DNA of 64,000 nucleotides. It comes from Macrostomum lignano (Eukaryota). A model generated the notes under the pieces. The model was not told the DNA's origin, ran no database searches, and saw only the letters and a program-made list of their open reading frames with translations. This document shows, piece after piece, positions 39,401-51,400 of this stretch; positions within the stretch are counted from its first letter, which is position 1, and every line of letters starts with the position of its first letter. The position numbers and the translations under genes are program-made. Where the stretch lies: the NCBI GenBank assembly GCA_002269645.1, contig NIVC01003526.1, forward strand, positions 1 through 64,000, in the 5' to 3' direction.

Positions 39401-42400
39401 CTTCTTGCGCCGTTCAGGCTTTAAAGTGGCTTCTTTCTATATATGTCGGCGCATTGTTGCCGAAAATTCATTGCGATAAACCCTGACACCCTGTCCCTGC
39501 CCTGACACCCTGTCCCTGCCCTGACACCCTGTCCCTGCCCTGACACCCTGTCCCTGCCCTGACACCCTGTCACTGCCCTGACACCCTGTCCCTGCCCTGA
39601 CACCCTGTCCCTGCCCTGACGATCCTCCTTGCCCTGAAACCCACCATATCAGAAAGCGACCCCCACCATATCTGCCACCCACCATACCTGACACTCACCA
39701 TATCTGACACTCATCATATCTGACAGACATCATATCTGACACTCACCATATCTGACACCCCATCATATCTGACGCCCACCATACCTGACACTCACCATAT
39801 CTGACACTCATCATATCTGACAGACATCATATCTGACACTCACCATATCTGACACCCACCATATCTGACTGACACCATGACGCCCACCATATCTGACACT
39901 CACCATATCTGACACTCACCATATCTGACACCCACCATATCTGACACCCACCATATTTGACGCCCACCATATTTGACGCCCTCCATATCTGACACCCACC
40001 ATATCTGACACCCACCATACCTGACCCTCACCATATCTGAAATCCGCCCCACCCCAAGGGACAGCATCCAGAGTAAGGAAACCAAGTAACCAAGCAGGCA
40101 CAGAACGCCAGTCTGCAAGCAAGTCACAACAAAATACATTCAGGCATAAGATACTAACAAGACCTAAGAAGATAAAAAATGGCTGATGACGCTAAAAATC
40201 GCATTCGAAAATCCCAAATGTCATTTTTATCACCGAAGGATTAACAAAAAAGAAATGAAAGCCGCTCGATTCGTAAGAGACAGCGTTATCTCCTTGCCAC
40301 AACAGAATCCCATTCTACGAGCTAGATTTAGAAAAATCCCATGCAAGTAATCTACGCCAGGCTCCGGGGGTGTTGGACTTTCGCCCGAGGCCAGGGGGCC
40401 GGCGGTCCAGTGGGATCGGGACATTATGCAGGTCCTGATCCCCTCTGTCCAGCGAAGAGTAAAAGCCCCCCCCCCCCCGACGCGTCCGTAATTAAGCCGG
40501 GCCGCCCTTGTCGTCTCGCTTAGAATTTTTCTTTGCTTCAAGGGCGGGCGACGTTTATCCGCGCTGAAGTGCGCGACCGAAGGCGGGGGGGGGGAGGCGC
40601 CTCAGAGGAGGCTGTCGATGGCGGGACTTCCAGCCGCTTCGGACTTTCATCATCTATCCGCCCGCGACCCCCCATGGCAACAGTTGCCATGTCCGATATG
40701 AAATAAGGTGGCGGGAATTCGCAACTGGCCGTCTCTCCCCTTCCCCTGCCGCCCGCTGTGCCCGCTCCTGGGGCGATTTTCGGCCCGCCAGATGCATTTG
40801 CATTCGGGCGGCTCCCCTGGGGGTGGCCTCGAGAGGCTCCGGTGGCCCGCAGTTGTTGGTGGTGGCGGCGCTCGTCAGGGGGTCTGGGAGTTTTTTGTAA
40901 AATAAATCCACTTTAAGCGCTGGGAAGCTTCAATTTTATCCAATTCAAATTGGATGGCGACGGGGGCAACTTTGTTTAGTCCGACCGCTTGCACTTTCTC
41001 CAGACTCTGGACGCCGGCATCGGCACGAATCGAAGTCGTTCAGCGGATCGCAGCTCCTGCCATCGGGTTATGGGGAGAGGCGGAGGCAACGACGTGGGAC
41101 GAGCTGCAGAGAGGCAGCAGCAGCTGCTACGACTGCGGATCAGTAAGTGGCTTTCTAGGTCACGGCGAGTTATCATCATCATCATCATCATCATCATCAT
41201 CATCATCATCATCATCTTCTTCTTCTTCTTCTTCTTCTGACTTTTTATCGCCTTTCGGCATAGTCAACCAGGCGGGTCCCCGTCTCACTCGCTAAGGCAC
41301 ACTTTCCTATGTCGAGCCAGGTTCGTTGCAGCCTGCTGTCGGCCACAGTTCGGGCACGGTACACGTCTACTGCGGTAGATTCTGCCGATGTTGGCCATCG
41401 GTGTGGTCCCGATCAGAGTGTCGGCTTGGTCCGTTCTCGTGTTCCGTTTCTTGCACGTCCTCCAGTGTCTCGCGAAATTGCTGCTGCCGAGCCATTTCCC
41501 GCAGCTTGTGCAGTTCGTGCGGCCGTCGGACTGGGTGGTTCCGCGGCACCACTTTTGGTGGTTTTTTCTGGTCGTTTCGGTCTTGAAAGGTTTCCCGCAC
41601 TTAGGGCAGGGGAGAGACACCTCCGCGACGGTGTGGTGCATGCGTTTGTGGTGAATGGCCAGTCCGCCTCTTGATGCGCATATCTTTTTGCAGTGCTCAT
41701 ATTTGCACCTGTAGCCCGTTAATTCGGTCTCTTGGGTGGGCTGTGTCCCTGCTAGGGGTGCTTCGGTTTGCTGATCGACTCCTTCTGGTGGTAAGTTCCC
41801 GCGCCTGCTTAACATCTTTTCTAAGATGTCCAGTTGGTGCCTTCTTTCCTTAGTCACTGCTCTCCAAGTCTCTCGATCCAGTGCCAGTCTTTCGATGTCT
41901 AGTTCGTCAACCTTTGCTGTTTTTAACATTTTTTTCCAGTATGACATAATAGTTTGTTTCCGTTTACGGGCTTTGCGAACACTCTCGAGGTCTTTGTTCC
42001 AGCCTAGTAGACATGCTTTGACGAGGTTTCCGTCGGGTAGTCGGATGATGTGGCCAAGCCGTCTCCAGTGGGCCATTTCGATCTTAGTTGCGACGCTTGC
42101 AATGCCGAGTTCCTGGCGGACGTCCCAGCTGTTGACCCCTTTCTCTTCCATTTCGCGTAGGATTGGTCTTTGTTTGCTGCTCCAGATCAGGCGGTATCTG
42201 CGGTCCATTGCTTGTTGCATCTTCTTAACCTCGGAGCGGTAGAAAGGTCTGGCCCCGCTGTTGAACAGCATGGTGCTCTCGACACATGCCTCCACGATCT
42301 TTGCCTGGGTCTTTTTACTCAGCCGAGTGCGGCGCAGCATGTTTCTCACCCCGCCCCAAGCTTTGGCTGCTCTTTGGAGGCGTTGGCTGGTATCGTTCTT

Positions 42401-48400: not shown

Positions 48401-51400
48401 CATCACTTCCGGTCCGTCTTTCCATAAGGGGTGTAACATGCTGTTAGATGTAAGTTGTTGACTTTGACCGTGACCGTTCTTTCGCCGAAAAATCGTTGAT
48501 GTCCTTGGTCCATCCATTGTTGTCTCCATTGGCGTCCTAGGAGTATTGCTGCTCTCTTCGAGTGGATTATGACCACGCCATTTTTTCCTTCTCCCATCCA
48601 TATCATCCCGGGTTGTTCCGCCGTTATTTCTGACATCAGTACTATGTTCCAGTGCTTTTTGTTGCAGAAGCCGCCACTTCTCGTAGTTTCCTTAGGTTGT
48701 TTTCTCTTAGCGAAATCTTCTGTAGGTTCCAGGTCACCATTTGTACCTTCTCTGTCGGTTCTTTCCTTAGGTTTTCGGTTCTGACTTTCTTCCAGGTCAC
48801 TATTTGTACCTTCTCTGTCGGTTCCTTCCTTAGGTTTTCGGTTCTGATTTTCTTCCGTCGTGTTCTTTTCCTTTCGCGGTCCTGTTTTCTCTTTTCTGGT
48901 GTCCATTCTTGCTTTCCTCGCCTGCATTTATTTTTTGTTATCGTCTCCTTTTGGGCCAGGTCTTCGGGCCCCGGGTTCCACTCCACGTCACCGCTCTTTG
49001 ACAATGAGTTTTTGATGTTAGAGTGCATCAGCCGCTGCAGATTTTTACATCTGTTTTGGCCTCCTTTGCATTTGCTGCTCCCTTTTTGTCGAGGCGTGCG
49101 GTCTATGCTTGCTACCGCTAGAAGGTAGGTGCAGCATGAGCAAGCCATCATAATCATAATCATAATCATCATCATCATCATCATCATAATCATCATCATC
49201 ATCATCATCATCATCATCATCATCATCATCATCATCATCATCATCATCATCATCATCATCATCATCATCATCATCATCATCATCATCATCATCATCATCA
49301 TCATCATCATCATGAGGGCAGTCTGACCTCAGCTTGGCCAGGCGGGAAATGATCCAAATCTATCTGAGTCTCGAATTTCTGCTGCCGAATTGAAGTGAAA
49401 CTTTCTGAGCTTCCTGCTATCCCTTCTTGTTTCTTCGGCTGCTGCCACCTGATTGATTGCAGTGGACTCGAGGCTTGCATCCCAAAGCTTATAATAATCC
49501 CAATATGCTGCGGTACGAGAGGCCTGAGCTGTTCTCTCTCACGCAATTTTAAAATGATCGATACGGAAGCTCTGGAACTTACCCGGTATAACCCAGGGTA
49601 TTCCAAAAATCTATGAGGGGAATTTTCAGGGGCACCTAGGGAATACCTAGCTTAACTTAGGGAATCACAAGAACAATCATATGAACAATCATATTCAAGA
49701 ACATTGAATACTCAGCAACACGAATAACTCCCAGGATATACACTCAAAGAACTCCCATCAACCCACCCAGTCAACAGGGGAATCCCCTATCAATAATTCC
49801 TATGGGAATCCGCAGTCAATAATCATCTAGGAATTCCCAGTAAAGAATCATCAGGGGAATCCCCAGTCAAGAATCGTCAGGGGAATCCCCAGTCAATAAT
49901 TATCAGTGGAATTCACCGTCAATAATCATCAAGGGAATCCCCAGTCAAGAATCATCAAGGGAATCCCCAGTCAAGAATCATCAGGGGAATCCCCAGTCAA
50001 TAATCATCAAGGGAACCCCCAGTCAATAATCATCCAGGAAATCCCCAGTCAAGAATCTTCAAGGGAATCCCCAGTCAAGAATCATCAAGGGAATTAATTC
50101 CCAGTCAAGAATCATCAAGGGAATTAATTCCCAGTTAAGAATCATCAAGGGAACCCCCGCTCAAAAATCGCCCGGGAATTCCCTAGAAGGCTAAGAATCC
50201 ACAATTCATGGATTCCCTAGGAATCCCTAACATTCACTCTGAAAATTCCGGGAATCCCAGTGTACAACTCTTCAATTCACCGCAGCCTTCGCCCGCCTCG
50301 GCCAGCCGCTCCGCCGGCACCGCTCAGCCGGCAGCGTGGCAGCCGCAGCTGCGTCAGCTGTCACCATCCAGCCGGCATCACCCGAGGCTGCCTCAGGCAG
50401 CAATGCCGCCGCGCAGAAGCAGAAGACTGCGGCCGTCTGCCGACCCAGGTCCGCCCTTGACTGCGGAGGCGGCGAGTGCTGCGGATTCGGCAGGTCGGAC
50501 TCGTACCAGCGGCTGGAGGTGCTCGGCGAGGGCAGCTACGCCACCGTCTTTAAAGGCGTGTCTCGGTGGGTGCCCGCTGAAAGCTTTGCCTTGGCTGGTG
50601 ACTGGGGCGGCACAAGCCCCACTGACCATAATATTTTAGCTTCATTTTAGCGCCGCAGGCGTGGATTTTCCAGGAAACGTGACTCCTCCCCTTATTTCCA
50701 CGGGATGGGGCAGATGACCCCTTGACCTCTCTTGTATGATTCGCCATCCAAGAGTGGCCGCGCCGCCGACTCGAACTCGGGAGCTTTGTAATGTGTTAGC
50801 GATAATTGTGATCTGCACTCCCATCTGCATTCAAGAGTGAACAACTCGATCGTGGCTCTGAAAGACATTCGACTGCAACGCGAGGAGGGCGCTCCGTTCA
50901 CTGCCATCAGGGAAGGTGAGAAAAAACAGGCAAAACGCGCCGCATTTGCTACTTGCTAGAGCCTGCCTCAAGTAGTGTCTCAGTAACTATGGGGATTTTT
51001 TTATTCCAGCCTCCCTGCTGAAAGGCTTAAAGCACGCAAACATAGTCACACTGCACGACATCATACACACGGAGATGAATTTGACCTTCGTGTTCGAATA
51101 CGTGGTGAGTGGGTTTAATAACTCTATCGCCCTGTTGACGATCTCAAATTAATGCAAGCAGCAGCACAACACAACCCCGACTGTACGAATGCAGCCGCAG
51201 GACCTCAGCAAATACCTGGAGAAGCACTCCGGAGGGCTCAGGGCCCACAACGCAAAGGTACGGCCTAACTGACTATCATTTTATAATAGACAAAAATAGA
51301 CATAGGACTGATCTAGTGTCTGTATAATCCAAGCTAGCGACACAGCTACTCGTATCAGGGACCTGCTGCATCTATAGACACACTCAGGGACCTGCTGCAT

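Follow-up and report, generated by a model that had tools for sequence, protein, structure and literature searches.

Two long interspersed nuclear elements (LINEs) lie one behind the other inside what looks like a single (GAT)n microsatellite, which raises the question whether the repeat belongs to the elements or was their target. The locus is part of a 64,000-nucleotide stretch of the Macrostomum lignano genome (contig NIVC01003526.1 of assembly GCA_002269645.1, positions 1 to 64,000; hereafter the window), and the elements are referred to as LINE1 and LINE2. The arrangement probably reflects one pre-existing (GAT)n tract that was struck twice by diverged members of a single LINE lineage, which has an apurinic/apyrimidinic-type endonuclease (APE) and a preference for (GAY)n. 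This preference seems to be recurrent and specific in orientation and 5' phase, with no absolute requirement for the repeat. Coordinates are given on the plus strand and repeat units are read on the minus strand, based on Tandem Repeats Finder (TRF) and direct sequence reading. On the minus strand, the order is (GAT)56, LINE2, (ACAAGG)~3 split by a 340-bp insertion, (GAT)36, LINE1, (AGA)8, (GAT)15 and unique DNA:

49146-49313, minus strand: (GAT)56 tract, 5' of LINE2 (TRF: 56 copies, 95% matches)
49145-45777, minus strand: LINE2, decayed full-length-type copy (tblastn with the LINE1 open reading frame (ORF); Pfam RVT_1 on fragments)
45777-45791, minus strand: own tail of LINE2, (ACAAGG)2.5, after a short 3' untranslated region (UTR) (TRF; one more unit lies beyond the 340-bp insertion)
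45437-45776, minus strand: 340-bp secondary insertion inside the (ACAAGG)n tail of LINE2 (sequence reading)
45321-45429, minus strand: (GAT)36 tract, separating the LINE1 5' end from the tail of LINE2 (TRF: 36.3 copies, 90%)
45320-41215, minus strand: LINE1, intact copy
41215-41238, minus strand: own tail of LINE1, (AGA)8, 100% pure (TRF)
41172-41216, minus strand: (GAT)15 tract, downstream of the LINE1 tail (TRF: 15 copies, 100% pure)

An earlier sequence-only reading had given the same array order with 55, 36, 7 and 15 units, which is right to within one unit. The shared orientation and the abutment of both 5' ends on GATG, also described there, are seen at both junctions: the two elements lie on the minus strand and start directly after ...GATG, the junctions reading gatgatgatg/GCCAGGC for LINE1 and gattatgatg/GCTTGCT for LINE2 (slash, junction). 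The (GAT)56 tract runs up to the LINE2 5' end as ...GATTATGATG, the (GAT)36 tract contains the variant units ATT, GAC, (GAA)3 and AAT, and unique DNA (aactcgccgtg...) starts after (GAT)15. Since no further (GAT)n tracts of at least four units and no other copies of LINE1 or LINE2 were found in the 64-kb window, the juxtaposition of elements and repeat is not mere background.

The two elements can be compared over the following parts:

41285-45208, minus strand: LINE1 ORF, 1307 aa, intact (ORF and Pfam)
45052-45029, minus strand: LINE1 2A-like TIEKNPGP, upstream of the APE (sequence)
~44902-44186, minus strand: LINE1 APE (Pfam)
from ~43240, with FADD at 42580-42563, minus strand: LINE1 reverse transcriptase (RT; Pfam and sequence)
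41713-41297, minus strand: four C-terminal zinc fingers (C2H2/C2HC) of LINE1 (sequence)
41239-41284, minus strand: LINE1 3' UTR, 46 nt, containing CGAAAGGCG (sequence)
48992-48966, minus strand: LINE2 2A-like GDVEWNPGP (sequence)
46165-45842, minus strand: LINE2 zinc-finger C-terminus (sequence)

Within the LINE1 ORF, the Pfam matches are Exo_endo_phos_2 (aa 197-339) and RVT_1 (aa 664-933). LINE2 is homologous to LINE1 over its full length, with an amino acid identity (tblastn) of 45% in the RT and 29% in the APE/linker part. Its APE, linker and RT segments occupy three frames, with frameshifts and in-frame stops, and the equivalent of LINE1 aa ~963-1200 is deleted; at the DNA level, likeness is confined to just one 213-bp stretch (67%). 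The RT identity of 45% rules out a tandem pair made by segmental duplication and, together with the different decay, indicates that LINE1 and LINE2 are separate insertion events. Judged by their sequences, they are old relatives and not duplicates. A 63-bp tandem duplication (48727-48856; 2.1 copies, 95%) is located in the N-terminal K/E/R-rich part of LINE2.

Whether the GAT tracts are part of the elements can be judged from relatives in other assemblies (denoted by L or P numbers), which were found by protein search. The LINE1 ORF as query gave 2 matches and a 5-sequence profile gave 8, with a word prefilter in use, and the ORF of the relative L003 gave 134 protein clusters at E<=1e-15, mostly on element-sized marine metagenome contigs. 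At E<=1e-30 the lineage counts 235 representative clusters; it is abundant in marine (Tara) and other aquatic metagenomes, and none of its clusters is informatively named. A scan of viral contigs for the lineage gave no matches. A neighbour-joining tree of the RT and C-terminal domain region puts LINE1 in a basal position and LINE2 together with P0122 and P0123. The L016 family is nearest to LINE1 (40-45% aa identity). In the relatives, a 3' UTR of 5-40 nt precedes a simple-repeat tail:

L001: own tail (TTCAAG)5
L003 and L008: own tail (AGA)5
L016, L017 and L018: own tail (AAG)3-4
L007: own tail (ATAG)3
P0046 family: own tail (AGACA)n
L009: own tail (ACCAG)4

In many of them (L001, L003, L008, L017, L018 and the P0046 family), this tail is directly followed by unique DNA. 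Because the relatives end in a family-specific tail of their own and then in unique DNA, GAT or GAY is not part of the element, and LINE1 and LINE2 therefore have (AGA)8 and (ACAAGG)n, respectively, as their true tails. The LINE1 tail type, (AGA)n/(AAG)n, is common to L003, L008, L016, L017 and L018. The earlier proposal that the GAT tracts are more likely target than tail is thus borne out by the relatives, whose tails are short, family-specific and free of GAY; a GAT tract carried by the element regardless of locus is not found, as relatives including L017 and L018 have no GAY after the tail. Few bases before the tail, a motif GAAAGC(C)/GAAAGGC is present in LINE1 (41239-41284), L002, L007 (~13716), L008 (~13786) and L010-L015. 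It is conserved across several otherwise diverged families and may be a 3' recognition element for the reverse transcriptase.

The association with the repeat recurs outside the window. Of the relatives concerned, L007 and L016-L018 stem from the long-read assemblies ERZ25067901 and ERZ25071359. In L007, located on a 258-kb long-read contig, (GAT)~45 is followed by an element starting with GCTTCCC, with an intact ORF, and then by (ATAG)3 and (GAT/GGT)~11; the 5' junction reads ...GATGGTG/GCTTCCC and coincides with the start of the ribozyme described below. GGT variant units are present on both sides of this element, which would fit a single pre-existing tract split by the insertion. In L016, also a long-read locus, a 3.2-kb array of (GAT)119, (GACGAT)n and (GAC)n runs up to the 5' end, and on the 3' side follow (AAG)4 and (GAC)82, and then another copy, which is 5'-truncated and oriented alike. 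This is the stacked architecture of the window, but in GAC. The L016 array itself (1539-4761), with (GAT)119, (GACGAT)n and (GAC)~900, lies beside a 7tm_1 receptor gene in an animal assembly. Weaker cases are L003, with a decayed (GAT)~14 tract at its 5' end that ends in GGTGATGATGGTG, and the 5'-truncated L002, with TGAGGATGAAGATGATGATGA immediately upstream. Thus, the association which had been proposed from a single locus recurs with the same layout, orientation and 5' phase in L007 and L016.

For LINE1, LINE2, L007 and L016, the repeat type is the same on both sides of each element (GAT/GAT, GAC/GAC or GAT+GGT/GAT+GGT). An AGA-type tail is common to LINE1 and L016, yet the one is flanked by GAT and the other by GAC. 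GAY stands on the sense strand of the element in all GAY-flanked cases, and the 5' flank ends in GAYG in all five with an intact 5' end (LINE1, LINE2, L007, L016 and L003). For the 3' junction, a reading in phase is possible, with an ambiguity of 1 nt since all tails can end in G. In about 166 kb of genomic loci, every (GAY)n tract of at least four units touches a LINE of this lineage, with none elsewhere. Independent long-read loci show the association in two of five cases (L007 and L016), compared to a tract density of at most 2% (binomial P<0.01); this count omits the window because of ascertainment, and the binomial is a simple estimate.

Such numbers bear on the idea that there is no sequence preference at all, and that copies in large neutral microsatellites survive better or are simply more noticeable. 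The window was indeed chosen because of its pattern, and insertions in non-repeat DNA with ordinary target site duplications (TSDs) do exist. This explanation is nevertheless very unlikely: two of the five long-read loci outside the window, as well as L003 and L002, show the association although GAY makes up at most 2% of the surveyed DNA and is nil away from LINEs. Orientation and 5' junction phase are constant, and introns and intergenic DNA would offer ample neutral space.

The flanks also bear on a second explanation, according to which (GAT)n is carried in the RNA, 3' of the family-specific repeat, for example after read-through from a master copy, or because the RNA is processed by the next ribozyme of a tandem array. 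The upstream tract would then be the tail of an earlier, possibly tail-only insertion, and targeting would amount to tail-to-tail annealing and not to recognition of a microsatellite in the genome. Own tail followed by GAY is what LINE1, LINE2, L007 and L016 have, the L010 tail is followed by AGAAGA+ATGATGATGAT, and (AGA)8 and (GAT)15 are both 100% pure. The (GAA)3 in (GAT)36 and the GGA/AGA/TGA mix in the L002 flank look as if related to an AGA tail, and with elements in tandem, cleavage of the upstream RNA by the downstream ribozyme would fall just past the GAY tract. However, L017 and L018, which belong to the L016 family, have clean TSDs and tails that no GAY follows. Closely related elements with AGA tails are succeeded by GAT in one genome and by GAC in another, each matching its own upstream flank. 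No (ATAG)n or 3' UTR remnant precedes the upstream tract of L007, and the ordered 3.2-kb array of L016 (GAT, then GACGAT, then GAC) resembles an evolving microsatellite and not stacked tails. A compound tail is therefore unlikely, and the tracts are better seen as pre-existing targets.

The 5' ends of LINE1 and LINE2 both carry a fold resembling the hepatitis delta virus (HDV) ribozyme:

45249-45320, minus strand: LINE1 HDV-like ribozyme fold (sub-threshold Rfam matches, helix check and covariation)
49074-49145, minus strand: LINE2 HDV-like ribozyme remnant (hand annotation and pair counts)

In LINE1, the base next to the GAT tract is also the first base of the fold. Its helices P2 (GAAACC/GGUUUC), P3 (ACC/GGU) and P4 (CGUCCCG/CGGGACG) pair throughout. 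In P1 (GCCAGGC/GCCAAGC), two central positions are mismatched; they are the only unpaired cells of the alignment below, and all other families start with (G)CUU.... Because of these two mismatches, the LINE1 ribozyme copy may be crippled despite the intact ORF. In LINE2, P1 (GCUUGCU/AGCAAGC), P2 (GCUGC/GCAGC) and P3 (ACC/GGU) can be recognised, while P4 and the J1/4 region are decayed. Rfam searches of small regions placed sub-threshold matches exactly at the LINE1 5' end (45320-45249; RF02682 with 22.4 bits, RF00094 with 24.3 bits) and exactly at the inferred 5' end of L001 (RF02682, 25.9 bits). These scores miss the gathering thresholds of 50 (RF00094) and 44 (RF02682), and a larger Rfam search by e-value gave no HDV match. 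Matches to snoRNA, miRNA and other Rfam families were dismissed as repeat artefacts.

Helices P1-P4 were annotated by hand in eight members (LINE1, LINE2, L001, L003, L004, L007, L008 and L011), where they occur in the canonical order of a nested double pseudoknot, with standard pairing in 98.6% of 144 cells. Two-sided changes were counted in 18 of 25 pairs (P2, 8/8; P4, 5/7; P3, 2/3). The observed values were matched by none of 500 shuffled controls, and when the partners were slid by 1-3 columns, 34-43% stayed paired. A G(G)CAAA motif, as a candidate J4/2 segment, stands between P4 and P2' in LINE1, L001, L003, L004, L008 and L011. Both LINE 5' termini thus carry a putative HDV-like ribozyme with covariation support, and self-cleavage is predicted. 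As the fold begins at base 1, the processed RNA would start at G1, and the upstream GAT tract would not be a 5' leader of the element; a leader of this kind was ruled out on the grounds that the fold starts at the first base past the tract. The LINE1 frame is open from element base 1 through to the ATG at 45208 (window 45209-45320). Read in this frame, the upstream (GAT)n is a run of TGA stops, and a G12 run is located between ribozyme and ATG.

The ribozyme-defined 5' end is also relevant for the possibility that the element's reverse transcriptase made the GAY tracts at integration, whether by slippage or by reiterative, non-templated synthesis at one junction or both, followed by expansion. 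RTE-type elements and further LINEs are documented to form 3' repeats by RT slippage (PMC2887409; see also the discussion of PMC6007223), (GAT)15 is pure and every surveyed GAY tract touches a LINE of the lineage. Still, tracts lie upstream of the ribozyme-defined end, where no template or seed exists, and many copies have no tract. The variant units common to both sides of L007 point to a pre-existing tract, and the type, GAT or GAC, differs between related elements. Like the compound tail, slippage is disfavoured because of same-family copies without GAY, flanks of matching type and tracts upstream of ribozyme-defined ends, and it is distinctly improbable as the source of the tracts.

Insertion into pre-existing (GAY)n remains the probable explanation, and several observations weigh against it or limit it. 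L017, of the same family and assembly as L016, lies in unique DNA with a 13-bp TSD (AATTGCTCTCGAA), and so does L018 of that family and assembly, with a TSD (GCCAATAA) of 8 bp, or up to 11 bp with tail overlap. L008 is likewise in unique DNA, with a 9-bp TSD (GGAACGTAG). No GAY microsatellite was found at six insertion sites of the P0046 family and no GAY tract at the 5' junctions of L001 and L004, and in L003 GAT is present on the 5' side only and absent from the 3' side. Lineage-wide, GAY borders on 7 of the about 19 copies whose junctions are readable (2 of 4 in the L016/L017/L018 family, and n=1 for each of the families in the window). Most metagenome contigs are built from short reads, so that the 5' and 3' flanks may derive from different copies. 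In purity, (GAT)15 equals the young (AGA)8, and a tract made or renewed at insertion fits this at least as well as an old tract would. The ribozyme alignment was fitted to the structure by hand, which inflates the pair counts, although changes on both sides of pairs remain numerous. Among 15 billion proteins, no relatives closer to the window elements than 39-45% identity were found; the best matches overall are 38-45% identical.

The short-read contigs of L010-L015 had no TSDs; as their flanks are possibly chimeric, they were not counted for or against. A shared nick motif in L008, L017 and L018 was rejected as unreliable (CATCAT, 2-12 nt upstream in two, in the orientation opposite to GAT sites). 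Since L017, L018, L008 and the six P0046 sites are in non-repeat DNA, the specificity is a preference and not a rule. From the (ATC)n specificity proposed in the sequence-only reading, the recurring preference stands; strictness does not, given the non-repeat insertions with ordinary TSDs in L008, L017 and L018. Its argument of two subfamilies converging on the same tract amounts to a single locus.

Based on these findings, the following course of events can be proposed. LINE2 would have been inserted first and then decayed, and LINE1 would later have entered the part of the tract downstream of LINE2. Target-primed reverse transcription would start at a nick in the (RTC)n bottom strand, presumably after C, where the terminal G of the tail RNA would pair with the target C, giving one nucleotide of RNA-primer pairing. 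Each of the tails in GAY sites (AAG, ACAAGG and ATAG) allows a reading with G as its last base, immediately followed by AY-GAY.... Such microhomology between tail and target has been described for RTE-type elements (PMC6007223). The top strand would then be joined after the G of a GAY unit, yielding ...GAYG/element with a junction offset of 1 (+3n) nucleotides, and the exact 5' end would be preset by ribozyme self-cleavage of a longer transcript.

As for the source of the bias, the APE, the zinc fingers and partial pairing of GAA-type tails with (RTC)n are candidates of equal standing; an APE endonuclease as the origin of specificity, as the sequence-only reading had it, is pure conjecture. 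One can go further and tentatively suppose an undescribed and widespread LINE lineage of marine and aquatic animals (>130 clusters), outside R1, Tx1 and R4, that reads (GAY)n in fixed orientation and register, either by its zinc fingers (in principle one triplet per finger) or by its APE. This is possible, though doubtful at present.

Dong, a member of the R4 clade, has a restriction-like endonuclease. Known microsatellite-specific LINEs comprise Waldo (ACAY)n and Mino (AC)n of R1, Kibi (TC)n, Koshi (TTC)n and the crocodilian Tx1 elements (TTCC/TTTC)n of Tx1, and Dong (TAA)n of R4 (PMC3812793, PMC4494074), with Dong placed among the APE-type elements in PMC3812793. Their specificity is usually ascribed to the endonuclease (PMC3812793, PMC4494074). 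Like these elements, the present lineage shows the same simple repeat on both sides, a fixed orientation and head-to-tail stacking. It differs in its target, (GAT)n/(GAC)n, combined with a simple-repeat tail that is not the target, and in being a different lineage with a 5' HDV-like ribozyme, a 2A-like peptide and C-terminal zinc fingers. Unlike in strict microsatellite LINEs, TSD-bearing copies in unique DNA are common here, which is nearer to Kojima's 'preferential' class, defined by the same repeat in >20% of flanks (PMC4494074). In the literature surveyed (Repbase not covered), no earlier report of a GAT/GAC-homing LINE was found. Microsatellite homing as such has precedents, and the (GAT)n/(GAC)n target and the lineage appear new. 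The precedents and the leaky specificity make the case less striking, and its recurrence in other genomes makes it better founded than one locus would.

According to PMC3774820, a 5' HDV-like ribozyme in R2 separates the RNA of the element from a co-transcript, exactly at the 5' junction or close to it, and the R2 reading frame continues openly to the 5' end, with no conserved AUG. The LINE1 lineage is similar in having a 5' HDV-like ribozyme and a frame open from base 1. In contrast, R2 has a restriction-like endonuclease C-terminal to the RT, N-terminal zinc-finger/Myb target binding and strict specificity. Judged from the sequences, elements of the present lineage begin with a putative HDV-like ribozyme, encode an N-terminal 2A-like peptide, APE, RT and four C-terminal zinc fingers, and end in a family-specific simple-repeat tail behind a very short 3' UTR. 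The N-terminal motifs of LINE1 and LINE2 are predicted 2A-like 'StopGo' peptides: the full D(V/I)ExNPGP motif is found in LINE2, and TIEKNPGP of LINE1 is without the D. L003 has TIESNPGP and L001 has TIHPNPGP; among relatives the motif is conserved as xTIExNPGP. In the family nearest to LINE1, L016 (~4960-5130) and L018 (8146-9993) have a zinc finger of PHD type, located after the 2A-like region and before the APE, which is absent from LINE1.

The sequence-only reading had assigned both elements to the RTE clade. LINE1 indeed shares with RTE (RTE-1, Bov-B and lepidopteran RTEs) a single ORF with N-terminal APE followed by RT, as well as a 3' UTR that is extremely short and ends in a simple-repeat tail. 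These features are not exclusive to RTE. According to PMC3708506, 2A-like peptides are reported in Rex1, Crack, L2, L2A, CR1 and Ingi, RTE not being among the listed clades; HDV-like ribozymes occur in R2, RTE, Baggins and L1Tc, and in some RTEs they are reported from the 5' end (PMC6765202). RTE elements also show a correlation between the choice of insertion or priming site and their own simple repeat (PMC2887409, PMC6007223). The 2A-like motif, the four C-terminal zinc fingers and the PHD finger of the L016/L018 family are not RTE hallmarks; reports of 2A-like motifs and PHD fingers concern other clades (PMC3708506). The next-nearest proteins, at 26-28% identity, carry RNase H and are named 'ribonuclease HI/exonuclease III'; this group includes proteins of the dinoflagellate Polarella glacialis. 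Because of the 2A-like motif, the PHD finger and the RNase H in these next-nearest relatives, RTE is disfavoured and the label appears doubtful for LINE1 and LINE2, an Ingi/Vingi-like or CR1-group affinity being at least as likely. The trypanosome element L1Tc has a 5' HDV-like ribozyme, an N-terminal 2A, APE, RT and C-terminal C2H2 motifs, in addition to an RNase H domain and a poly(A) tail. Its combination of ribozyme, 2A, APE, RT and C-terminal zinc fingers, as in the present lineage, makes L1Tc/Ingi a lead, and the Vingi clade is reportedly related to Ingi.

Target-specific LINEs are natural models of retrotransposon site choice and lately also scaffolds for programmable insertion, as in R2-based systems. 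With a separate lineage that homes to (GAT)n/(GAC)n in a fixed register, repeat targeting would gain a further independent origin, here in an element of modular build. If it is true that this lineage reads (GAY)n, retrotransposition directed by triplet repeats would have a natural example, coupled to 5' ends that a ribozyme defines. The leaky specificity may make the lineage an intermediate form, between insertion without specificity and insertion at specific sites. In practice, LINE landing pads and stacked arrays may be marked in these genomes by GAT/GAC tracts of great length, and microsatellite markers of GAT/GAC type will be repeat-linked.

Besides the elements, the window contains some further features. 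The 340-bp insertion in the LINE2 tail is bordered by GACA(G/A) and is possibly a solo long terminal repeat (LTR); it has no second copy in the 64-kb window. Four minisatellites flank the LINE array, at 39481-39642, 39658-40040, 49771-50169 and 51356-51665, with units of 19, 16, 26 and 29 bp, respectively, the 29-bp array being 99% pure with 10.7 copies. Finally, a plus-strand exon at ~50480-50570 encodes the start of a PCTAIRE/PFTAIRE-type CDK kinase domain, with CDK16 as the best PDB match. This predicted exon near 50.5 kb is consistent with the cdk14 label of the sequence-only reading, which had proposed that the array lies antisense in an intron of that gene.

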